Positions 7,289 to 50,163 of a stretch of 50,163 bases of DNA are shown here, in pieces. The notes under the pieces are model-generated. The model did no database searches. It had not been told where the DNA came from and saw only the letters and a list, made by a program, of their open reading frames with translations. A program made the translations under genes and the position numbers. Every line of letters starts with the position of its first letter. Within the stretch, counting starts at the first letter, position 1. The stretch comes from Andalucia godoyi And28 (lineage: Eukaryota > Protista > Jakobida): contig VRVR01000030.1 in assembly GCA_009859145.1 (NCBI GenBank), positions 255,069 to 305,231 on the forward strand, given 5' to 3'.

Positions 7289-9472
7289 CTATTCCGCGTT
7301 TGCGGCCTGCGTCACGACGCTCTGCGCCAGTCGGAAGATGTTCACATGAGACGCAGTCCCACGCTTCCAACCGTCTGGATACCATCCTTGGTCTCGCTGA
7401 CACATTCGATCGTAGTACCACTGCAGTTGCGGGTACTGACCGGCAAGGACTAATCCTCTTCGCACCAGATACTCCAGTACAGGGAAAAACGCGACGTCTG
7501 CGATCGTCACGCAGGAAGCAAACGGCTCTTCTTGAATATATGACTCCCATATGCGCAGCTGCGAGGCTGTATGCTCGAGGGCACTGCGGATCGACGCCTG
7601 CTCGCCATTTGCCAGTGTCAGCACGCTCTTCGTAAACAAGAGTTCCATGCCTTCATAAGCGCTTATCAAATACTCCGTCTCTTGCATCCGTGTGCGCACT
7701 ATTCCTTTCAGACGCAAAGGAAGGTTTCTGCAAAACGAGATTGATGATTGAGCCGGATTCGTCGAGGACGAGGCAACTTCAGTGCCATCTGTCTGCAAAG
7801 CCGATTCATCAAGATGCGTCAATATTGCCAGAGATTCATGCAGGACCGTCCCGTCTTCTTCAAGCAGCACTGGTGTTTTCCCTTGAGGATTGATATGCAA
7901 AAACAAAGGGTTGCGCGTATCTCGCACTTTGCCCATGATTTTCATGCGAACGGGCTTAAAAGGCAGCCTGCATTCGAGGAGCATCATCATTGCACGCATG
8001 CTTGGAATCGAGCCGTTCACATAAAACAGTTTCCGTGTGTACAGTGGTGCGCCCTGGATCCTCTTTGGGTTGCAAATGGCGCGCGAGCGAAAGCCTCCGC
8101 CATACACAGCCATCCACCGAAACACCGAGCTCGTCAAGCGATTTTCTAAATGAAATGCAGCGAGCATTTCCGTTTCATCCGTGTCACGCATCGGTGTCTC
8201 CAAACCTCGCAGGGCTTCCAAGAACGTGCGGAACGGACTTCCTTGGCCCCATATGAGCTGCTGCGAATCCATCGATGTTTCAAATGTGCCAATCTTTCGA
8301 AATGTGAACGAAACCCGCTCACCTTCGATGGGCTTCCCATGTGCGTTGTACTTTTTCGGAATGCTGTGGAGGTAATCCGCATTGGCAGCCAGGGACAGTA
8401 TGAAAACCGATCCGTGCACCATGGGAATTTCAACCGTGCGCGATATTCCTTTTGCTCTGAGCACCATGGTCCGCGTACTGCCGAAGCTGACATTCACAAT
8501 GTTGGTGCTAGGGATAATATCCAGTGTCTTGTCAGAGTGCTCGCCAATGTTGTCTTCTCCGTGTCTGTATCTCTGCAACAAACCGTGATTCAAATCGTGT
8601 CCGACAACCAATTCCACCCGCCGACGGATCTCATCAACGATTGGCGAAAACCCGGATGCGACAGGGTGTTCCGACGCTGGATGGCGATAGAGAGGCATGG
8701 TCGGTCCGTTCAACATCTCGCATTGCAGAGCAACCAACCGCGGAACGACGCTAGTACCATGAGAATGCATCACACCCCATTTGATTTCATCGATAATGGA
8801 GCGGACATCGTAATCGGCAAGGACGCGGGGATAGAGGGTGAATCCATCACCAGCAAGCGACAGATTCGCAGGGATTGCAGAGTCTTTGAGGATGTCTTCA
8901 AAACGAATTGTTTGGATACTGCTGCATCTCTCCTTCATTTCCTTGAGAGCTCTCCGATGGTCTTGCGATGTTGCAGCGGCGCAAAGGTCGCTCACCACTT
9001 GCACCGTATAGCCAAGATGCACCGCGTCCAACGCACTGGCCAAAACACAAACATTGGTAGCAACGCCAACGATCCACAATTCCGTGACTCCGCAGCGCTG
9101 CAGATCTTCGTGTAATGTTGTGTTTGCAAACGCAGAGTACCACCGTTTGCACACCACCACATCGGAAACAGGGTCGATCGTCAGGGGATGTGCGAGCTCG
9201 TGGCCAAACGTTTGCGGAATGCAGCATGTCTTTCTCCCTCGGTGCGTGCCGTTCAAAAAGGCGCTCTTTTGCGCGGAAATGACAATGTCCGGTTCGTCCG
9301 TGCAGTTCGAGTAGTCGGAAAGAATCCAGAAAACCCATTTCCCGGTTGCGCGAGCAGTAACGCAGCACCATTGAATGCCTGTTGAGAGTACGTGAGCATC
9401 CACATGCCGTTGCGGAAACGCACCGTTCGGATGAAGAAAATCGTTTTGACAATCAATGACGAGAAGAGCCAT
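7289..9472 (-). CDS. Fusion of isochorismatase/cysteine hydrolase, 2OG-Fe(II) oxygenase (AlkB-like) and GST-like domains
   Basis: VIDCQNDF, KRWYSAF, GVATNVCV (D-K-C triad); HSDK, HSIP, RVSFTFR (HxD..H..R); INPQGKTPVL, ESLAIL, TIADVAFFP (GST N/C). Confidence 0.9.
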   Translation of the reverse strand: MALLVIDCQNDFLHPNGAFPQRHVDAHVLSTGIQWCCVTARATGKWVFWILSDYSNCTDEPDIVISAQKSAFLNGTHRGRKTCCIPQTFGHELAHPLTIDPVSDVVVCKRWYSAFANTTLHEDLQRCGVTELWIVGVATNVCVLASALDAVHLGYTVQVVSDLCAAATSQDHRRALKEMKERCSSIQTIRFEDILKDSAIPANLSLAGDGFTLYPRVLADYDVRSIIDEIKWGVMHSHGTSVVPRLVALQCEMLNGPTMPLYRHPASEHPVASGFSPIVDEIRRRVELVVGHDLNHGLLQRYRHGEDNIGEHSDKTLDIIPSTNIVNVSFGSTRTMVLRAKGISRTVEIPMVHGSVFILSLAANADYLHSIPKKYNAHGKPIEGERVSFTFRKIGTFETSMDSQQLIWGQGSPFRTFLEALRGLETPMRDTDETEMLAAFHLENRLTSSVFRWMAVYGGGFRSRAICNPKRIQGAPLYTRKLFYVNGSIPSMRAMMMLLECRLPFKPVRMKIMGKVRDTRNPLFLHINPQGKTPVLLEEDGTVLHESLAILTHLDESALQTDGTEVASSSTNPAQSSISFCRNLPLRLKGIVRTRMQETEYLISAYEGMELLFTKSVLTLANGEQASIRSALEHTASQLRIWESYIQEEPFASCVTIADVAFFPVLEYLVRRGLVLAGQYPQLQWYYDRMCQRDQGWYPDGWKRGTASHVNIFRLAQSVVTQAANAE

Positions 9473-9799
9473 GGATGAGGAGAAGAAGCAAGGATCATGG
9501 AATCTGCGGTGAAGTTCCCAGAAGAAGAAGAAAAAGAAGAAGAAAAAGAAGAAGAAAAAGAAAAAGGAAAAACCAGCGAGTGCAGGATCCATCTAGGGAA
9601 GGCACATCTTCATTCTCGCAAACAAGCCCGACATCGATGAAGTTCAACGAACCTGCATGACTCAGCAACACCATCAAAGAAAAACGATTCAAGCCAGTTC
9701 GTCCTTCCATAATAATAATGATGATGCACAACGCACATCGTGAAATGGCATCACGAGAAAAATCGACAGGAGCTGCCAAAAGCGATCGTTCGCAGCTTC

Positions 9800-14701: not shown

Positions 14702-15937
14702 ATGTCGTTTGATGGAAAAGGAACCGTGATTATCGATGTTGGAACAGGATACACAAAGATGGGGTATGCAGGGAATGTGACTCCATCCTATGTGATCCCG
14801 ACGGCAATTGGTCTTCCGGACGCAAAGTCCAATGTGTCTGCGATCAAAGGTGTGGATGACCTCGACTTCCACATTGGGCAGGCTGCGATCGACAATGCCA
14901 ACTTTTACAAGCTTTCGTACCCCGTTCGCCACGGCCAAGTTGAGAACTGGGATGCGATGGAGCGCTTCTGGGAGCAGTGTTTCTTCAAGTATCTTCGGTG
15001 CGACCCCTCCGACCATGCCGTTGTCCTGACCGAGCCGCCACTGAACGCACCGGAAAACAGAGAGTACACAGCCGAGGTGATGTTTGAGACGTTTGGTGTG
15101 AAGTCCATGTACATTGCAGTGCAGGCAGTGTTGGCGCTCACAGCCAGTTGGACGTCGAAAAAGGCGGCGTCCGCAAACACTGTGGGGTTGTTGTCTGGCA
15201 CGGTTGTGGACTCCGGAGACGGCGTGACGCATGTGATCCCTGTCGTGGAAGGCTATGTCATTGGATCTGCGATTCGTCATATTCCGCTTGCCGGACGAGA
15301 CATCACCGAGTTCATCATGCGCTTCATCAAGGAGCGAGAGCCGTTACTGCCTGCAGAGGACGCCTTGCAAGTTGCGATGCGAATCAAGGAAAAATATGGA
15401 TACGTGTGCCAGTCGCTTCCCAAGGAGTTTGCCAAGTTCGACAAGGATCCGTCCAAGTACATCAAGATTTATGAGGGTCTTGACCGGCGAACCAAGCAGC
15501 CGTGGAAAATCGATGTGGCTTACGAACAATTCTTGGGTCCGGAGGTGTTTTTCAACCCGGAGATTTTCTCTTCCGACTTCACCACTCCACTGCCGCAGGT
15601 AGTCGATCAGGTTGTGCAGGCCTGTCCCATCGATACCAGACGTGATTTGTATCGCAACATTGTGCTTTCTGGCGGCTCTACGATGTTCCGCCATTTCGCC
15701 AAGAGGCTGCAAGAAGATGTCAAGGGTATTGTTGACAATAGATATGCTTCTGCGGCAACGCAAGTCGATGTCAATGTCATCTCGCACGATTTCCAACGGT
15801 ACGCTGTGTTTGTCGGTGCATCTGTCATGGCTGCCACCGCTGGCTTTGAACAAGTGCTCATCACCAAGCAAATGTACGATGAATACGGCCCATCGATCGC
15901 CCGACATTCAAAGCTGTTTTCCGCTTCCACACTGTAA
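14702..15937 (+). CDS. ARP3: Actin-related protein 3 (Arp2/3 complex)
   Basis: IDVGTGYTKMGYAGN, DDLDFHIG, LTEPPLNAPENREYTAEVMFETF, LYRNIVLSGGSTMF, QRYAVF. Confidence 0.96.
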   Translation: MSFDGKGTVIIDVGTGYTKMGYAGNVTPSYVIPTAIGLPDAKSNVSAIKGVDDLDFHIGQAAIDNANFYKLSYPVRHGQVENWDAMERFWEQCFFKYLRCDPSDHAVVLTEPPLNAPENREYTAEVMFETFGVKSMYIAVQAVLALTASWTSKKAASANTVGLLSGTVVDSGDGVTHVIPVVEGYVIGSAIRHIPLAGRDITEFIMRFIKEREPLLPAEDALQVAMRIKEKYGYVCQSLPKEFAKFDKDPSKYIKIYEGLDRRTKQPWKIDVAYEQFLGPEVFFNPEIFSSDFTTPLPQVVDQVVQACPIDTRRDLYRNIVLSGGSTMFRHFAKRLQEDVKGIVDNRYASAATQVDVNVISHDFQRYAVFVGASVMAATAGFEQVLITKQMYDEYGPSIARHSKLFSASTL

Positions 15938-31728: not shown

Positions 31729-32272
31729 TCAACCCTTTGGATCTCCAAAGATTTGATGGACGTACTTCAGAGCAGCAAGACTCGCATCGTGTTGCATGTC
31801 CCGTAATTTTGCGTGCCTCCTTGCACTTGAAAACTCGCGGACGGAAAAGGCGGCATCTTCAGGGAGCTGAACGACGGCCTTTCGACGGCCTGCATCTTGG
31901 TACGTTGACTGTCCCTTGTTGAGGGCCAGTAGATAGTCATGCAGTAAAGACTTGGGCAACCGCTTTTCCGACCACGTTTTCTCGTCAAATGTTCTTGGTA
32001 GTCCTTCGACAATACGGTCCAGCTTCTCCTTTGCACTCAGATTCCATCCCTGCTCACTGAACGCAGATCGTCGTTTCTTCTTCTTGTTGTTCTCTTTCGG
32101 CGGCTCAGCCCGCGCATCTGCATCCATCTCGTCCGTTATCCCAGTCTCATTCAAATGACTCGCTTTGAATCGCTTGGAGTCTCGATCCTTGCTGTCTCCT
32201 GTTCGTTTTGATCGTTTCCCGGATGTGCTGTCTTTGGAGACTTTCTGCTCATGCTTATGATGACGTGTTTGA

Positions 32273-32305
<33 letters not shown>

Positions 32306-32982
32306 GCAGAATCAGTAGCGAACGCATCTTCCTTCACCCTCTGCCTCTTTCGGCTTGACGATTCCAGACCATGTTCACCATCCCAACGATCCTTTCGATT
32401 AAAATTGTTGCTACCGTTGCCATTAGAACGACTGCTGTTGCTAATGTCGTTATTGCTGTTATTGATGTGATGGTTTCTACGAGAAGAACGATCTGCAAAC
32501 GACTCGTTTGCTTCCGCACGGGAAATCATTCTGCAAGTCCACCCAAGATGGCCTCGTCCGCCGCACAGGAAGCAATACTTTGTTTCCTTTGCTTCAAACA
32601 GCCTGGAGTTCGCGCACGAGAAGTGCCCGCTTACACCGCAGTTCATGCATACCGCATGCGAAGCAGGATCGCAGTCCATCAGTCCGGACATGAATGTGCG
32701 CTGTGGACAATCCCGGATGACATGACCCGTGAGATAGCACGCATGGCACTGCACATGCCGTGATCGTCCAAGCATCGATTCGGGGCAGTCCTGGGACTTG
32801 TGCCCCGGTTCCCCACAGCGATAGCAGAACCCGTGGCGGCACGAGTTCTGCTTGTGCTGCATCGACCCGCACAACAGACACACATCTCCTGAAGGAGGCT
32901 CTTCAAACCCCAGAGCCCGAAGCACCGGGTCTGAATGAGGAACAATCAGATCCGCTGCGCTCAATCCATAATATCGATTCAT
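31729..32982 (-). CDS. AIR1/2 (ZCCHC7)-like multi zinc-knuckle protein with an extra C-terminal dsRBD-like domain
   Basis: NRYYG motif (cf. GRYF); five CCHC knuckles (e.g. CYRCGEPGHKSQDC, YCFLCGGRGHLGWTC); C-terminal LPKSLLHDYL..HDASLAAL. Confidence 0.8.
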
Positions 32983-34002: not shown

Positions 34003-35165
34003 TTAGTTTGAATCTGCCACGGGCCCTAACGTGCAATACAGGTAATGAAGGGCCATCAAACTGGCTGCATGCTCACCGGTCTTCACAGACGGATAGTTCT
34101 TGATGGTTGTGAACTCTCTGCGTGTGAAGATCGGGTCATCCGGAAGCAAAACGGAAATTTGGAACTCGTGTCCAAACTGCTGTCTCTCAAACTTGGGCCC
34201 GCCCTTCTTCAATGACTGCAAATATTCGAGAAGCATGGACTTTGGCATGCGCGTCGTGTCTTTCCACGTATCCTGGTCGAATGTCGCAGGCAAACTTTCG
34301 TGGAGACTCATTTCCTCGAGCGCTGCCTCGGTTTCCAACAGCGTGTCATCCAGTTCGAACTCGTCCAAGTTTGCTTCTTCAAGCTGCTGCTCTTCATCCC
34401 ACTCTGGGTGCGCATCCTTCTCATATACATCCACACCAGCATCATCGTCGACAAACATTGCTGCATTCGTTGCAAACAGCTCGCGACCGGTCAGTCCCTT
34501 CTTCTTCGGGCCGCCTTCCTTGTCCTTCGCTCTTTGCTCTGCCGCTCTCTTCAAGTCGTTCTCTGCCTTCCACTTGAAGAACAGCTCCTCTGTCAGCACC
34601 GTCTGATTTCCATCGACAAGCTTGGATCTCTCTTCGTCCACGACTTCCTCCAGCGTCTTTACTTCCTCCTCCGAGTCGTCCGAGGCCTCGGAGCCGCTTT
34701 CGTCTGCATCGCTGTCTTCTGCTGCAGCTTCCGCTCTTCTCTTCTCAGCTTCCTCGCGTGCAAGCCGATCCTTTTCAGTCTCTGCAGGACGGAAAAGACG
34801 CAACAGCTCCTCTTGGCGAGCCTTGTCCTGCTCGCGCTTCAACCGCCGAGCCTCGTTTGGATCCACAGTCTTGCGACCCCCACCTCCATGAATCTGCGTT
34901 CTAACAGTACTTACAAATTTCTGAACCTTTTTTGACTTGCTCTTGTTTTTCAATCCAAAACTGATATTCAAAAAGGAAGGACAAATTAAAAACATTAAAA
35001 AAATGGGTTAGTACGTGTAATTTGTGCCATCGCAGGGAAGAGTTGCCGATTTGCGAAACCGTGTGTGTACTACTATCCATAATAACGCCAGCAAAAAGAC
35101 AATGATGCATACGTCAATTCCTCGACCTTCTTTTCTTTTCTCTGCTTTTCCGCTTTCGGTGGCAT
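34003..35165 (-). CDS. ZC3H15: ZC3H15/Tma46 (DFRP1)-like protein lacking CCCH fingers, with a C-terminal dsRBD-like domain; exons 35165-35113 and 34960-34003
   Basis: Spliced N-terminus MPPKAEKQRKEKKVEELTFGLKNKSKSKKVQKFV; DFRP motifs LTEELFFKWK, LTGRELF, FVDDD. Confidence 0.85.
34961..35112 (-). other. Spliceosomal intron (152 nt) with a TACTAAC branch point at 35013-35007
   Basis: GTATGC donor, CAG acceptor; restores the conserved TFGLKNK. Confidence 0.93.
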
Positions 35166-38627: not shown

Positions 38628-39320
38628 CTAGGACTGATCTCCGTGCTCCTCGTCTGCGTCGTCATAGAGCCCGTCCTCGTCCTCGGCGTTGCTGTTGTTT
38701 TCATCATCATCATCATCATCACCATCATCGTCGTCGTCGTCGTCATCACCGTCGTCCATGCCTTCAAAGTCTTGGTTTTCATCGTCTTCGTCAATGTCGG
38801 GATTCATCTCGACGCATTTCGAAAATGTGTCGTACATGGAATCGCACAGTGTCGCCGCATTGCGGTCTTTTGCGTCTGCCGGTACAATCTGGAACTGCAA
38901 GCTTTCGGCAGCCTCGTCGATCTTGCCGTCTACAGCCTCATCGTCTGTCCTTGGACCGTCAATCTGGAGGTAGATACAGGATCGTTTGGTGTGGCCGACA
39001 GCATGCATCGCGACTGCAGACCATGCAATACGGAACCCAAGCGACTCGGAGCGCTTGGTCAAAAAATATAACGACCGGGACGTGACGTGCAGATCGCCTT
39101 CTCCAAGAAGTTCATATTGATCCAGTGGATCACCCTCACCTTCTGCCTCTGCCTCCACCTCTCTTTCACCTTCTGCCTGTGTGTCCTGTTCCGAGTGAAG
39201 CAGCTCGCGATAGAGTAAAACATGAGGTATGTATCGAATCGTCTCTTCATCATCGATGGGAAACACAGTGGGGACCATCCGTGATCCGTCCGGAGACGCT
39301 CGCCATCCAACTTGATCCAT
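38628..39320 (-). CDS. CLNS1A: Methylosome subunit pICln (Voldacs/PH-like domain); start placed at MDQVGW
   Basis: GEGDLHVTSRSLYF, GFRIAWSAVAMHAV, CIYLQID, MYDTFSKCVEMNPD, acidic tail. Confidence 0.85.
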   Translation of the reverse strand: MDQVGWRASPDGSRMVPTVFPIDDEETIRYIPHVLLYRELLHSEQDTQAEGEREVEAEAEGEGDPLDQYELLGEGDLHVTSRSLYFLTKRSESLGFRIAWSAVAMHAVGHTKRSCIYLQIDGPRTDDEAVDGKIDEAAESLQFQIVPADAKDRNAATLCDSMYDTFSKCVEMNPDIDEDDENQDFEGMDDGDDDDDDDDGDDDDDDENNSNAEDEDGLYDDADEEHGDQS

Positions 39321-39373
39321 TCCTGAACTATGTGATGCGATATGTGATGCGCCTATGTCTGTAAGCAGGTAGT

Positions 39374-39375
<2 letters not shown>

Positions 39376-39425
<50 letters not shown>
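39376..39425. repeat. (TG)n microsatellite upstream of pICln
   Basis: Directly visible. Confidence 0.92.
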
Positions 39426-39434
<9 letters not shown>

Positions 39435-39907
39435 GCGGATGTTGCTCTCTCCGTTTGCACGATCCCACAGGACCAATGCAGCTCTGGACCGTGGTTCGGG
39501 CTCCAGCATCAAGTGCTGCAAGAAAGCAAGGCACAACAAAACACTCAACGATCTCGGCACCGGGCAAACAGCCTGCTCGTCCTTCTCATATTTTTTTCTC
39601 TATTGGTCTTGTTGGTCTTGTAGGTCTTCTTCTTTTGTAGGTCTTATTGGTCATCAGATTTCACAAGAAATCGAGAAACACAGAGTCGTGCTGAAAGCAG
39701 CCAGAATATTTTGTGTTTCAACGGTTGATTGGGTTTTCTTGGGTGTTTGTTTGTTGAGGGTTTTTCTTCTTCTTCTTTCCATTTTCAAAATTTCCATTTT
39801 TAATTGTAATCATTTTGGGCAGCTGTCTCGCATATCACCGCCCAAAGCATTGCAACTCTGCAAAGCCATAATAGTTGTAACAAAATTCTTGTTGTTCTCC
39901 TCCTTTC

Positions 39908-45193: not shown

Positions 45194-45829
45194 TTACGCA
45201 GCCAAAGACAGGGAGGCTTTCGGGAGCTGGAAGGTCATTTCGAACCACGGACGCTGGCCCATATCGACGGCGGCCTGTCCAATGATCCGAAAGCCATGCT
45301 TCTCGTACATCTTGATGACTTTATCGTGTGCCAGGAGCGCGACTTCCTGGATTCCCGAAAGTCTCGGGACCTTGTATGCGAGGTATGCTTTGAGCAACCA
45401 CGCTCCGATTCCTTTTCCACGCAGCTCGGCTCTGACGGCAACCGAGTGGATGCAGAGTCTGCGTCCACCCTCGTCATGAGACTTCATGACATCCGACGTG
45501 ATGCACGAAGCAGCCGAGCGAGAAGACGAGATGAACGCAACGATACGCTTGGAGCGCACGTCACGAGCCACTAGGAAATGATCTGGACAGCGCAGAATAC
45601 GGTCCAAAAACACATGCTCCTGAGTGGCCTCGTCCGCGGAAAAGGACTCGCGCTCGATCTGAACAATATCGTCCAGATCTTTCAAGGTCACAGGGTTAAA
45701 GTCAAGGAAGAGGCCAATGGGTCCTTCGAAAGGCACTGGGACAGTGACTGGGACCGGGACAGAAGGCGCAAGAAGAAAGTTCTGTCCAACGACATTGGGG
45801 AGAGCAACACAGAGATCTGCGGCGACCAT
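45194..45829 (-). CDS. GNAT N-acetyltransferase, AANAT/Paa1-like
   Basis: IERESFSADEA, LCIHSVAVRAELRGKGIG (motif A), MYEKHGF, WFEM. Confidence 0.88.
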   Translation of the reverse strand: MVAADLCVALPNVVGQNFLLAPSVPVPVTVPVPFEGPIGLFLDFNPVTLKDLDDIVQIERESFSADEATQEHVFLDRILRCPDHFLVARDVRSKRIVAFISSSRSAASCITSDVMKSHDEGGRRLCIHSVAVRAELRGKGIGAWLLKAYLAYKVPRLSGIQEVALLAHDKVIKMYEKHGFRIIGQAAVDMGQRPWFEMTFQLPKASLSLAA

Positions 45830-46310
45830 GGTGAATTCAGTTCAGCGGAGGTAGTAGGGGAAATAAAGGGGTTGACCATCAAGAAACGGAATGTCAAGTA
45901 TGGGGACGTCAGCTTTATCTTCAGAGGTTCTTTAAAATCCAAACACTTGTAGTGGTTTTGAAGGAAAATGACGAACACGATGAGAAGCGCTTGGAATCGA
46001 GTGCACTAGGAGAACGAACCTTTGTCTTGTTTTGGGATACGAAAAAGGAGGAGAGGAAGAAGAGAGAGAAAACAGGAAAAGGAAAACGAAAAGGAAAAGG
46101 AAAAGGAAACAGGAATAAAAATAAGCGAGTGTGAGCCTTAAATACGAGTAAAATTGTCCGCTAAAAAAATAAAAAGGTGAACCTGGTTGCCGAAGTCAGT
46201 TGAGCTGGCAACTGGAAGGTAAGATTACCGCATGTGGTAAGATTCGGGTTGCAGTGTGCTGACGTCACATGTCACACATAGTCAATGGTCACCCATCCGA
46301 AGGGAATCCT

Positions 46311-46324
46311 GCATCACGTGATGC
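46311..46324. promoter_or_regulatory. 14-bp palindrome GCATCACGTGATGC, copy 2; TGACGTCA at 46260-46267 nearby
   Basis: Seen directly; about 203 nt upstream of the urea transporter ATG. Confidence 0.55.
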
Positions 46325-46526
46325 TGCGGTGGCGGCCTTTCCTTTTTTGGACAGCAAGACTGCAGGAGATTCCGCTGACACCTGGAAGGGGCGGCGAAAT
46401 CCCCGACCGTCGTTATCGCTCTGGTCCTGCATCGCTGTTTTCTTTTAAAGGAGGGGATGTCTAGGCGCTGGTCTCCGTTTGACAGTCTGCCCTCCCATTT
46501 TGACTTCCAAAGCAACAACAACAACA

Positions 46527-49199
46527 ATGCATTCAATGCCTTTCGCAAGAGAGCCCCGCATTTCCATGTCTGCCGATGATGGCGTGAACGAGACGGACGA
46601 ACTGCGAGTATACGGCACATTCGGAATCCAGTCCAGCGAAAAGACGCTTGGAGAACAGCAGAACTCTGGATTTCTTCCGCCCTCGCAGACGTCTCAGAAC
46701 TGGAAATCCGTTAGCGATCGAAAGACTTCCAAGGGACCAAAGAAGTCGGTCAGACAGCGGGCGTTTCTCCGGCTGCAGGATTTTGGCGGAACTGCCTCAA
46801 GACTCCAGATGACGAATGCATCTTCCTACTTTGCATTCGTGTTTGTCGACACTGCCTTGCGAGGAATCTCTCAGGTTTTCTTCGTAAGCAACCCGCTGAC
46901 AGGAATTCTGTTCGTTGCCGGTATTGCTATTGAATCGTGGTATCTGGCGGTGGCGTGCTTGATTGGTGCCGTATCCTCCACGGTTTCTGCATACTTTTTC
47001 GAGCTGGACAAAGGATCCACGCAGTCCGGCTTATTCGGATACTCAGGGGTCCTGACTGCAATGGCAGTGGCGTTCTTTTCGTTTGGAGACAAGAGCGACC
47101 CTTTTCCGGCTCCGCAGATTTTTGTGCCGCTCGTGTTCCTCCCTGTGTTTGCAACCATCTGCACAGTGGCGTTCGGATCCTTCTTTGCTGGAAAGCTTGG
47201 AATTCCTCCTTTCACATTCCCTTTTCAAGTTGTGACCTGGACGTGGCTGCTCTTTGCGCAGGCTTCGCTGTACTTTCAGAACAATGGGAATATTCTGGCT
47301 CCTCGTTCTCCGCCGGCGTTCACTTCGATGAGCACAGCCGCCGCGCTGACGTATGATGGTTCGGAAGTCGTTAGGTCATTCTTCACGAGCGTTTCGCAAG
47401 TATTTTTCCTCGAGAATCCATATTCGGGAGCTGTTATGCTTCTCGGGATTGCAGTATCTTCTCCCATTATGTCCGCCGCAGCGCTGGGTGGAACCGTCTT
47501 GGGGGTGCTGTTTGCAATGGGTTTGGGGATCGCGCCGGCACCTATTTATGCGGGGCTTTGGGGTTATAATCAATGTCTTTCTGCGATTGCCATTGGTGGG
47601 CTGTTTTTCGTACCCCAAGGTACGAAGACACTGGTGATGTACGTGCTTTGCATCTTGTTCACGACACTCATTCACGGAGCAGTTGCATCATACCTTGTGC
47701 TTTTTGCTCTTCCTGCACTAACATTCCCGTTTACCATGGCGTCTTGGATCTTTTGCCTGCTGGGTGGAGCGGCAAAGGGCATCGTGGCCGTAGAGCTTTC
47801 TGCGGTGTCTGTTCCGGAAGATCATCGCCGCCGATTCCTTCTTTCTGCATTCGTTTTCAGAACGTTCAATTCCATCAGACTTGCTCACTCTTTTGTCGGG
47901 AACCAGATTCGGAAAGAAGATCTGCGATCCATCGAGAACGACATTGTGCCAGTTCTGACGTGCACGTGGGCAGCACACGGCTGCTTTGCAAAAATTCAAA
48001 AACTCAGAGATGTTGGCGTGGACTGCAGCATTCCAGATTATGACCTCCGTACTCCTCTTCATTTGGCTTGTTGCGAAGGGCACAACAAGATCGCCGAAGT
48101 TTTGCTGAAGCGATTTTACGTGCCGATTTCAGTCGATAAATTCGGAAATTCTCCACTGATGGATGCCATTTTCCACGGCCAGAGCAATATCGTTCGAATG
48201 TTTGTCAGTCACGGAGTTCGCGTCCAGGGAATTCGCGAGGAAACGCTCGGATTTTGGCTCTGCGCAGCGGCATACGAAGGAGAGTGGCAGTTTATTCGGC
48301 TTTGTTTGAGTGCTGGAGTCAATGTGAATTCTCTCGACTACGACTCTCGATCAGCGCTGTCGCTGGCGGTATCGGCGAACCGAAGCAGCATCGTCCCATA
48401 CCTGCTGGCGTGCGGCGCGAATCCTTACCTGCGAGATCGGTTTGGAAAGTGCCCCATTGATGAAGCGGCTTCGCAGGAAATGAAGCAGATGCTGCAAGCT
48501 CGTCATTCAAACGTCCAAACCACCACGGACAACCTTGCCCGCTTGTCGGAATCAATAGATGCGCAGAGTTCAGCTGGATTGCCAATGGTGAGCAGTGCTG
48601 ATGGTTCTGATGACGGTGCAGAGGGACAGATGGATGAGATGTCTGTTATTATCACCACACTGCTTTGCACAAAGGCATCCAGCGATGACGTCCCTGGAAT
48701 CCAATCCTTGCTTACAAGCCACCAACGGCATGGTAGTCTGGTAAGCAGCACTGACTATGACGGCCGAACACCGCTGCATGTTGCGTGTTCGCGAGGTTCG
48801 TCGAATGCTGTGCGATTTCTTCTTGAAAATGGTGCAAACGCACTTGCAGTGGATCGTTGGGGACGTACCCCGCTTTACGAAGCTGCCTATTCTGGGCATG
48901 CAGAGGCAGTCCTCAGCATCCTCAGTCATGCGGATAATGCTGCGTATTCAGATGCTTTCGTTTCAAAGGAGAAACTCGGATTCACCAAGTACTACCGGTT
49001 GGTACACGAAATTTGCATGCTGGCTTCATCTGGGAATTCTAAACTCTTGGATTTGCTCTTCCGTCACGGAGTAATTCCAAAAGACATTTGCGATTATGAC
49101 CAACGTACACCACTGCACATTGCAGCTTCTCTTGGGCATCGTGAGGTAGTCAGTGTATTGTTGGACGCAGGAGTCATCCCGAATCCCATGGATCGGTGA
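46527..49199 (+). CDS. Urea transporter (UT/SLC14 family) fused to C-terminal ankyrin repeats; extends to TAG 49281-49283 if TGA 49197 is decoded
   Basis: LRGISQVFFVSNP, GLFGYSG, PPFTFPF, SQVFFLENP, GLWGYN, PALTFPF, VPEDHR; then DYDxRTPLH and DR(W/F)GxTPL ankyrins. Confidence 0.93.
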   Translation: MHSMPFAREPRISMSADDGVNETDELRVYGTFGIQSSEKTLGEQQNSGFLPPSQTSQNWKSVSDRKTSKGPKKSVRQRAFLRLQDFGGTASRLQMTNASSYFAFVFVDTALRGISQVFFVSNPLTGILFVAGIAIESWYLAVACLIGAVSSTVSAYFFELDKGSTQSGLFGYSGVLTAMAVAFFSFGDKSDPFPAPQIFVPLVFLPVFATICTVAFGSFFAGKLGIPPFTFPFQVVTWTWLLFAQASLYFQNNGNILAPRSPPAFTSMSTAAALTYDGSEVVRSFFTSVSQVFFLENPYSGAVMLLGIAVSSPIMSAAALGGTVLGVLFAMGLGIAPAPIYAGLWGYNQCLSAIAIGGLFFVPQGTKTLVMYVLCILFTTLIHGAVASYLVLFALPALTFPFTMASWIFCLLGGAAKGIVAVELSAVSVPEDHRRRFLLSAFVFRTFNSIRLAHSFVGNQIRKEDLRSIENDIVPVLTCTWAAHGCFAKIQKLRDVGVDCSIPDYDLRTPLHLACCEGHNKIAEVLLKRFYVPISVDKFGNSPLMDAIFHGQSNIVRMFVSHGVRVQGIREETLGFWLCAAAYEGEWQFIRLCLSAGVNVNSLDYDSRSALSLAVSANRSSIVPYLLACGANPYLRDRFGKCPIDEAASQEMKQMLQARHSNVQTTTDNLARLSESIDAQSSAGLPMVSSADGSDDGAEGQMDEMSVIITTLLCTKASSDDVPGIQSLLTSHQRHGSLVSSTDYDGRTPLHVACSRGSSNAVRFLLENGANALAVDRWGRTPLYEAAYSGHAEAVLSILSHADNAAYSDAFVSKEKLGFTKYYRLVHEICMLASSGNSKLLDLLFRHGVIPKDICDYDQRTPLHIAASLGHREVVSVLLDAGVIPNPMDR

Positions 49200-50163
49200 G
49201 GATCAACGCCACTTCAAAATGCGCTCACTATGGGATTCGAAGACATTGCAAGCATTCTTCAAAAATACGACATCATGACGTAGAATGAGTCCCGCGCGAG
49301 GGACGGGGACCTCAAAAAAAAAAAAAAAGAAACAATCTCGATTTGCTGTTCCGAAGGTTCTCTGAAGGGGATACCGCCACTATTATAAAGGCCGTGATCA
49401 GCGAAGAAGCAGCAAGCACGTTCGTCGACAAAATTCAAAACCATTGGGATCCGGTTCCACCCTAAAGTATCAATTCTCTAATGTGTGAATTTATGTCTTC
49501 TGTGTCGCACTTCTCAGCATCTGCAGTGCGACTGTTCTGTGCTTTGCACGGTCGATACATTGCTCGCCCTGACGCACACGCCTTTTACATGCTTATTTCA
49601 AACAACCGATACATCGGGAATCACAAGTGAGTGTACAGTTCAACGCTGTTGTCCTGAATTACGGAAATTCGAACATTGATCAATTGGGCACAAGGGGCGT
49701 TACGCAGCCAAACAGTTTCGTAATCGATGAAGCATGACCAATGCGCTTCGGAAAAAACGTCTTCCAGCAAAGATTCTTCTGGATGTTCAGACAAATACAA
49801 ATACGGAAAATAACCCGTTGTGTTGCATCACACCCAAGATTGCAGTCTATTCATTCTTTTCGCCTCAACCTCGCTTCATAACATCAATCTGCCTCTTATA
49901 TATTATGTACACATTGATCGAAAGATCTCAATAGCGAAAACATTCCTACTTTCGACCTCAACAATAGTGACAGTCCCTCTGTCGATCGTCGGTAGGGTTT
50001 GAACATATACGGAACACGGTCCACAGCACTTTTTCTGAGGTAATGCTGGGGACTGGTAGAGTCGCGGACGGCGAGCAATCTGGCAAAAGAAATTCTCTTG
50101 GGGACGACGCCGTTCAGGAGTTATACGTAAAATATTAATTACCTAATTCCCGACTACAGTCGC

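Follow-up and report, generated by a model that had tools for sequence, protein, structure and literature searches.

A urea transporter-ankyrin protein in the jakobid Andalucia godoyi: four ankyrin cassettes, a likeness to plant Shaker channels and an in-frame TGA

In the jakobid protist Andalucia godoyi And28, one nuclear gene encodes the membrane domain of a urea transporter (UT) followed by a tail of twelve ankyrin repeats. The gene lies in a stretch of 50,163 nucleotides of contig VRVR01000030.1 (assembly GCA_009859145.1, positions 255,069 to 305,231, forward strand), referred to below as the window, and all coordinates are those of this stretch. The protein is most plausibly a passive urea channel whose cytosolic ankyrin tail docks regulators or restrains the channel, a reading to which a probability of about 0.65 can be attached. 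The domain assignments are near certain; it is the regulatory role of the tail, proposed by analogy, that is the source of the uncertainty. The UT-ankyrin architecture is already known, and the window copy adds a diverged, possibly truncated member. What is new here is the four-cassette anatomy of the tail, which is conserved cassette by cassette, a connection with the double ankyrin cassette of plant Shaker channels, and a premature stop codon in the last repeat.

One gene and one reading frame

Do the urea transporter and the ankyrin repeats belong to the same polypeptide? A scan for open reading frames (ORFs) finds one on the + strand that spans 46479 to a TGA at 49197-49199 without interruption, while the opposite strand beneath it holds short ORFs only. 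The coding sequence as assembled begins at the first ATG and ends at this in-frame TGA (46527..49199, +), giving a product of 890 amino acids. The database model of the protein (P0001), which is found in EukProt only, takes the second ATG at 46566 as its start (MSADDG) and is 877 amino acids long. The UT and ankyrin parts share one continuous reading frame and no stop or start signal separates them. The junction is itself conserved, reading PEDHRRRF ... IExxLxPxLLC in an alignment of 8 family members. The UT domain and the ankyrin tail are one gene in a compact, intron-poor protist genome.

The UT and ankyrin families are the only ones matched in the protein by a Pfam scan. The structure of the protein was modelled with AlphaFold2 from the alignment of 8 family members; the mean predicted local distance difference test score (pLDDT) is 66.9, with the blocks of the tail mostly at 75-89. 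Ahead of the membrane domain is a hydrophilic N-terminal extension (residues 1-106; 46527..46844, +), which is unconserved in the homologue alignment and predicted to be disordered, with a pLDDT below 50 at model residues 1-87.

The membrane domain

The UT domain, of the SLC14 type, occupies residues 107-412 (46845..47762, +; Pfam PF03253, E 1.6e-74). The match scores 251 bits against a cut-off of 25 and covers positions 1-290 of the 292 in the profile. The closest solved structures are those of human UT-A and UT-B, zebrafish UT and Desulfovibrio UT (dvUT), with E-values from 1e-39 to 1e-82. Two pore motifs are found within the domain. The first, PPFTFPF (residues 227-233; 47205..47225, +), has a threonine that aligns with the threonine of the FTLPF motif of human UT-A. 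The second, PALTFPF (residues 396-402; 47712..47732, +), carries the symmetry-related threonine and also aligns to the UT-A motif. The threonine, proline and phenylalanine columns of the pore motifs are invariant in all eight aligned family members. Both pore motifs are intact, with no sign of pore degeneration.

Directly after the last membrane helix is a juxtamembrane motif, VPEDHRRRF (47811..47837, +), that aligns with YPEANRIYY of human UT-A; its proline, its glutamate and one arginine are invariant among the eight family members. In the known UT structures three subunits associate, each with a pore of its own, and the N- and C-termini are cytosolic. Urea channels of this family are usually regarded as simple pores, and vertebrate UTs are controlled through trafficking and through phosphorylation of their short termini.

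Twelve repeats in four cassettes

The C-terminal half of the protein matches the ankyrin families of Pfam strongly (Ank_2, E 9.6e-51; Ank, E 4.1e-41; PF00023 / PF12796). Its repeats follow a regular plan. The motif DYDxR(T/S)(P/A)L occurs at residues 504, 604, 743 and 856, and the motif D(R/K)(W/F/*)G, where the asterisk is a stop codon, at residues 537, 637, 776 and 889, each exactly 33 residues past its DYD motif. Four cassettes of three repeats can be delimited in this way. Cassette 1 (residues 473-567; 47943..48227, +) comprises repeats 1-3 with the motifs VLTCTWAAHG, DYDLRTPLH and DKFGNSPL, and cassette 2 (residues 573-667; 48243..48527, +) comprises repeats 4-6 with WLCAAAYEGE, DYDSRSAL and DRFGKCPI. 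Repeats 7-9 form cassette 3 (residues 712-806; 48660..48944, +), with LLCTKASSDD, DYDGRTPLH and DRWGRTPL. Repeats 10-12 form cassette 4 (residues 825-918; 48999..49280, +), with ICMLASSGNS, DYDQRTPLH and DR*GSTPL, and it is this last cassette that has the stop codon inside it. Between cassettes 2 and 3 lies an acidic, serine-rich linker (residues 668-711; 48528..48659, +) for which disorder is predicted and whose length differs from one homologue to another.

In the AlphaFold2 model the tail consists of 12 helix pairs grouped in four triplets. The first two triplets adjoin each other, a disordered stretch of 44 residues parts triplet 2 from triplet 3, and a short insertion parts triplet 3 from triplet 4. 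The model suggests that the tail is made of two six-ankyrin modules, each of two three-repeat cassettes, joined by the disordered acidic linker. A recent duplication of cassettes at the DNA level is ruled out. Only the DYD region repeats as DNA, at 67-76% over 33 nucleotides, and because the repeat is confined to that region, the duplications that gave rise to the cassettes are old.

The original prediction, which was made from the letters of the DNA alone, had described a single gene with a complete UT domain and an ankyrin tail. The continuous ORF agrees with this, and homologues are likewise fused. The limits that it gave for the UT domain, about 46840-47830, were essentially right when set beside those given by Pfam. 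Its count of about 12 repeats in four blocks of like order agrees with both the motif positions and the helix pairs of the model.

A family found in several eukaryotic supergroups

Seven relatives that match the UT and ankyrin families of Pfam, as the window protein does, came out of a word-indexed search. They are 31-40% identical to it over 61-91% of the length and include ANDGO_05627 of Andalucia godoyi itself and CAOG_00074 of Capsaspora owczarzaki; no database relative more than 40% identical to the window protein was found in this search. A search with the UT domain by itself yielded short UT proteins only, its word filter having passed over the known fused homologues, and says nothing about architecture. 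At 35% identity, ANDGO_05627 is possibly a paralogue. A wider view comes from an exhaustive HMMER search of 1.84 billion representative sequences, the matches of which were re-scanned with the UT profile. At least 37 distinct clusters at 50% identity, the window's own included, have a UT domain followed by a tail of 340-770 amino acids. Most of these clusters are environmental sequences. The named members come from Chromosphaera perkinsii, the choanoflagellate Diaphanoeca grandis, the hemimastigote Spironema and one MMETSP transcript. The distribution of these sequences indicates that the UT-ankyrin family is present in several eukaryotic supergroups. One UT-ankyrin homologue (P0004) is filed as part of a metagenome-assembled genome (MAG) of an archaeon, with the name 'MAG: hypothetical protein EOO41_01370, Methanobacteriota archaeon'; the source is most likely a mis-binned eukaryotic contig.

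The transcript-derived homologues (Diaphanoeca, Spironema and MMETSP) carry UT and ankyrin parts together, and in two others (P0002 and P0008, from the genomic contigs L001 and L002) a single ORF runs through both parts without a break. Because of these transcript-derived members and the two uninterrupted genomic ORFs, the question of a single polypeptide is settled at the level of the family.

Is the order of the cassettes conserved as well? The family alignment was cut at the four cassette positions and one profile was made from each, with the window sequence left out. Cassettes 1-4 of the window score 88.0, 95.5, 90.0 and 94.3 bits against their cognate profiles, and these are the best values in every row and every column of the comparison. 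The cassettes are thus orthologous by position. Since the cognate cassette scores highest in all comparisons, the four-cassette layout is older than the divergence of these lineages and ancestral to the family.

UT domain architectures have been surveyed by Cagliani et al. (2026, Biol Direct 21:32, PMC12998343). In that survey, the domain seen most often together with UT in rotifers, arthropods and protists is ankyrin, mostly C-terminal, and a regulatory role is proposed for the repeats by analogy with TRP channels. A literature search found no other paper that joins UT and ankyrin in one protein. These results modify two statements of the original prediction. It had held that animal UTs are essentially without ankyrin tails, a view contradicted by the rotifer and arthropod proteins listed in the survey. 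It had also named a widespread and already characterised architecture as the finding that would speak against its proposal. The architecture is indeed widespread, as the 37 clusters and the survey's listing show, but it is not functionally characterised.

Glutaminases and Shaker channels

The cassettes had been called glutaminase-type in the original prediction, which had also pointed to related repeats in ASPG asparaginase and plant Shaker K+ channels. Comparisons with GLS and with a Shaker channel were made with sequences checked against solved structures: the ankyrin sequence of the glutaminase GLS against PDB 5U0I (98 of 99 residues agree) and the ankyrin domain of the Shaker channel SKOR against PDB 8JEC. 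In GLS, DYDSRTALH and DRWNNTP stand 33 residues apart in one three-repeat unit. This signature pair of GLS and GLS2 (DYDxRTxLH and a DRWxxTP-like motif at a spacing of 33 residues) is found in all four window cassettes. The six-repeat ankyrin domain of SKOR consists of two cassettes with DYD and D(K/R)(L/W)G motifs, in the same order as in the window protein. The motif pair is uncommon elsewhere, with 31 occurrences in about 2100 repeats of 118 unrelated giant ankyrin proteins, a set chosen with a cruder UT filter.

In BLASTP comparisons the window cassettes score 47-67 bits against GLS, 52-61 bits against SKOR cassette 2, 44-53 bits against SKOR cassette 1 and 41-57 bits against a designed capped consensus ankyrin; for every cassette GLS stands 3-10 bits above the designed consensus. 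Longer stretches bring out the Shaker channels. Cassettes 1 and 2 align with the six-repeat domain of GORK in one stretch of 173 residues at 96 bits, and cassettes 3 and 4 align with SKOR at 95 bits; the best single stretch in ankyrin-1 reaches 39 bits.

The family cassette profiles give a similar picture. GLS scores 70-90 bits, SKOR cassette 2 scores 79-90 bits, and an idealised consensus triplet scores 109-152 bits and outscores GLS on all four profiles. SKOR cassette 2 equals or exceeds GLS on three of the four, while GLS is higher on the profile of cassette 3. Against a background of about 2680 natural three-repeat windows from 111 unrelated giant ankyrin proteins, which is biased towards similarity to the query, the score of GLS is reached by 4-11% of the windows and that of SKOR cassette 2 by 0.6-8%.

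Taken as sequence comparisons, these data indicate that the likeness to GLS is real in signature motifs and triplet order, and that it is equally common to plant Shaker channels. It appears too weak to claim that the tail descends from a glutaminase. Of the 'glutaminase-type' label, the shared motifs stand, but a specific kinship is not borne out by the scores: SKOR cassette 2 scores about as high as GLS, and both exceed the designed consensus by a few bits only. The pointer to the Shaker channels held good. The resemblance to these channels is limited to the ankyrin module. In plant Shaker K+ channels (SKOR, GORK, AKT1) a voltage-sensor and pore domain and a cyclic-nucleotide-binding homology domain precede the ankyrin domain; Pfam matches UT and ankyrin only in the window protein, which is not a member of that family.

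A TGA codon in the last repeat

Where does the protein end? The TGA at 49197..49199 (+) falls at the conserved tryptophan position of the last DRWG motif, a column that holds W in 28 of 31 aligned homologues. Beyond it are 27 in-frame sense codons and a TAG at 49281-49283 (49200..49283, +). The codons up to the TAG read GSTPLQNALTMGFEDIASILQKYDIMT and encode both helices of repeat 12. The alignments to GLS and SKOR reach into this stretch, where a good ankyrin repeat is kept. The stretch would be translated only if the TGA were an error or were read through.

Several ways of reading the TGA as something other than a stop or an error can be set aside. An alternative code with TGA as tryptophan is ruled out, as TGA terminates several other long, real ORFs of the window and none of them has an internal TGA. 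Selenocysteine is ruled out by the conserved tryptophan column and by a search of 45800-50163, which found no match to a selenocysteine insertion sequence (SECIS) or any other Rfam family. An intron starting from the GGTGAG that overlaps the TGA is ruled out too, for the 27 downstream codons continue the repeat in frame and align to homologues. An independent copy of the locus, in which TGA could be compared with TGG, was sought in metagenome contigs and none was found, and a contig index has no entry for the protein. Because the tryptophan column is conserved and TGA is an ordinary stop here, the codon is either a nonsense mutation that arose very recently or an assembly error at one base, the two being equally possible.

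As assembled, the protein is without the helices of repeat 12. Nine homologues stop naturally 11-20 residues past the D of the last DRWG motif and are also without these helices (P0157, P0164, P0174, P0183, P0211, P0215, P0218, P0221 and P0226). Loss of the helices appears to be tolerated because these nine proteins end there naturally, and on this comparison the truncated product may still be functional.

A regulated urea channel?

By homology, the UT part would form a passive trimeric urea pore with both termini in the cytosol. Because UT termini are cytosolic, the C-terminal extension of about 480 residues is expected to lie in the cytosol as well. The tail itself would conduct no urea. It would act as a cytosolic platform for regulation and scaffolding, as a docking site for partner proteins (kinases or phosphatases, for example), as a restraint on the channel core, or as both. 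This proposal is made because the tail most resembles the ankyrin modules of plant Shaker channels and of GLS/GLS2. The ankyrin domain of plant Shaker channels binds CIPK23 and phosphatases and feeds back on gating, and through the bridge that precedes it the domain shifts the channel towards a pre-open state (PMC12318183). The ankyrin triplet of GLS and GLS2 is placed between the subunits of the enzyme and reduces its activity (PMC10912226). The conservation of a 12-ankyrin tail across supergroups would imply that urea flux is subject to further control, or to membrane organisation, and the likeness of the tail to a regulator-docking Shaker domain provides a concrete hypothesis that can be tested.

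Several points weigh against this proposal. Ankyrin repeats are generic interaction modules, and the analogy with Shaker channels and GLS fixes neither the partner nor the direction of regulation. A trimeric UT would not match the symmetry of ankyrin modules of the kind that form dimers in GLS. In the AlphaFold2 model, confidence in the UT part is only moderate, and its superposition on solved UTs is poor. A fold search with the full model returned generic matches to designed ankyrin repeat proteins (DARPins), ankyrins and UTs, with poor superposition, and was not discriminating. The sole paper found on UT-ankyrin proteins (PMC12998343) goes no further than listing the architecture. Finally, the premature stop could mean that the gene is decaying in this organism.

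How do other explanations fare? That the UT and ankyrin parts are two separate genes abutting in frame is a general possibility only and is close to refuted, given the continuous frame, the conserved junction, and the same fusion in 37 clusters that include transcript-derived proteins. It is improbable, too, that the gene is a recently inactivated pseudogene with the TGA as its first lesion. Such a reading draws on a stop at a tryptophan codon kept by 28 of 31 relatives, in a window where TGA is an ordinary stop and in a region with no SECIS element. Yet the 918 codons contain no other lesion, both pore motifs and the other repeats are intact, and the 27 codons past the stop still make a good ankyrin repeat; nine homologues have a natural end near the same point, and an assembly error of one base would explain the codon equally well.

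The remaining alternatives accept the gene and differ over the tail. One view is that the tail is derived from a glutaminase and couples urea transport physically to nitrogen-metabolism enzymes in a metabolon, an idea close to the coupling raised by the original prediction. The shared DYDSRTALH ... DRWNNTP motifs and the 3-10 bits by which GLS exceeds the designed consensus would fit. However, SKOR cassettes fit equally well or better, the idealised triplet beats GLS on every profile, and 4-11% of natural windows reach the GLS score. Moreover, there are no urea- or nitrogen-metabolism genes near the UT gene in the window and none adjoining two homologues; the neighbours in all three places are unrelated, and the coupling finds no backing in them. 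A metabolon of this kind is very doubtful. A mainly structural tail, which would not regulate permeation but anchor or cluster the channel on the cortical cytoskeleton or at a particular membrane domain, or serve as a mechanical tether like that of NOMPC, is unlikely but deserves somewhat more weight. The high-scoring matches include long arrays (ankyrin-1 and NOMPC), and two modules on a flexible linker would suit such a role. Against it, the similarity per stretch is highest for the regulatory Shaker domain (96 bits as opposed to 39 for ankyrin-1), and the disordered linker splits the 12 repeats so that they form no continuous spring. A passive channel with a regulatory ankyrin tail is preferred to each of these explanations.

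A broader idea can be added to the regulatory reading, as a speculation that is itself unlikely to hold. The three-repeat cassette with DYD and DRW motifs might be an ancient regulatory module able to move between proteins, attached on separate occasions to glutaminases, plant Shaker channels and UTs, and recruiting the same class of regulator in each, for example a kinase/phosphatase pair. If so, the urea channels of many protists would be gated by signalling and not constitutively open, and the ancestral form would be the double cassette of six repeats, duplicated in tandem in the window protein.

Genomic surroundings

The window is compact and intron-poor, with genes on alternating strands that include those for an ELO elongase, GAPDH, Arp3, an adaptin and a copine. 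Its dense gene packing and scarcity of introns are similar to what has been described for Andalucia godoyi (PMC7050145). The upstream neighbour of the UT gene encodes a GNAT acetyltransferase in divergent orientation. Arp3 (14702-15937) has at most 66% identity to any other protein in a database of 5.8 billion sequences and shows no clear affinity. An ORF of 767 amino acids at 7289-9592 (-) combines an isochorismatase, an AlkB-like 2OG-Fe(II) oxygenase and a full GST with N- and C-terminal domains, which is an unusual triple fusion. The 5' end of this ORF crosses a long T tract that is read as poly-Phe, and the true start is probably the internal MALLVIDCQ.

The products of two same-strand neighbours, at 31729-32982 (-) and 34003-34995 (-), resemble each other over about 90 residues towards the C-terminus, which include TWSEKRLPKSLLHDYLLALNKG and TWKDTTRMPKSMLLEYLQSLKKG. 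They are unlike at the N-terminus, where one has CCHC zinc knuckles and the other a DFRP/Tma46 domain. The C-terminal segment is a candidate for an unannotated domain common to both. Near the 5' end of the ORF at 38628-39560 (-), just upstream of a gene with a Voldacs/ICln domain, a (CA)n/(TG)n microsatellite is read as THTHTHTH; it probably lies in the 5' untranslated region and not in coding sequence.

Comparison with known systems

Within its own family, the window protein is built like ANDGO_05627 and CAOG_00074, which also have a UT domain and C-terminal ankyrin repeats in four cassettes of the same order and register. It differs from the family members in the premature TGA of its last repeat. 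The survey of UT architectures (PMC12998343) lists UT and ankyrin by architecture and does not resolve the tail into cassettes.

UT-A and UT-B (SLC14) and dvUT share with the window protein a homologous membrane domain, both pore threonine motifs and the YPE/VPE juxtamembrane motif. In contrast to the window protein, they either stop soon after this domain or, like UT-A1, contain it twice, and they have no ankyrin tail. The ankyrin triplet of GLS (KGA) and GLS2 (PDB 5U0I, 5U0K) can be aligned with the window cassettes over 50-92 residues, at 28-53% identity. It is present as a single cassette on a soluble mitochondrial enzyme, and its overall profile similarity does not exceed the upper range of ordinary ankyrin triplets.

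The ankyrin domain of SKOR and GORK (PDB 8JEC, 8WFZ) has the motifs xxAAxxGD, DYDxR(S/T)PLH and D(K/R)(L/W)GxTPL in six repeats and two cassettes, as in one module of the window tail. It is collinear with cassettes 1 and 2 and also with cassettes 3 and 4 and, like the tail, is part of the cytosolic end of a membrane channel. In SKOR and GORK, however, the domain follows a cyclic-nucleotide-binding homology domain, belongs to a tetrameric K+ channel and is present once. The window protein has the six-repeat module twice, directly after the UT domain, and the identity of the module to its Shaker counterparts is only 32-33%.

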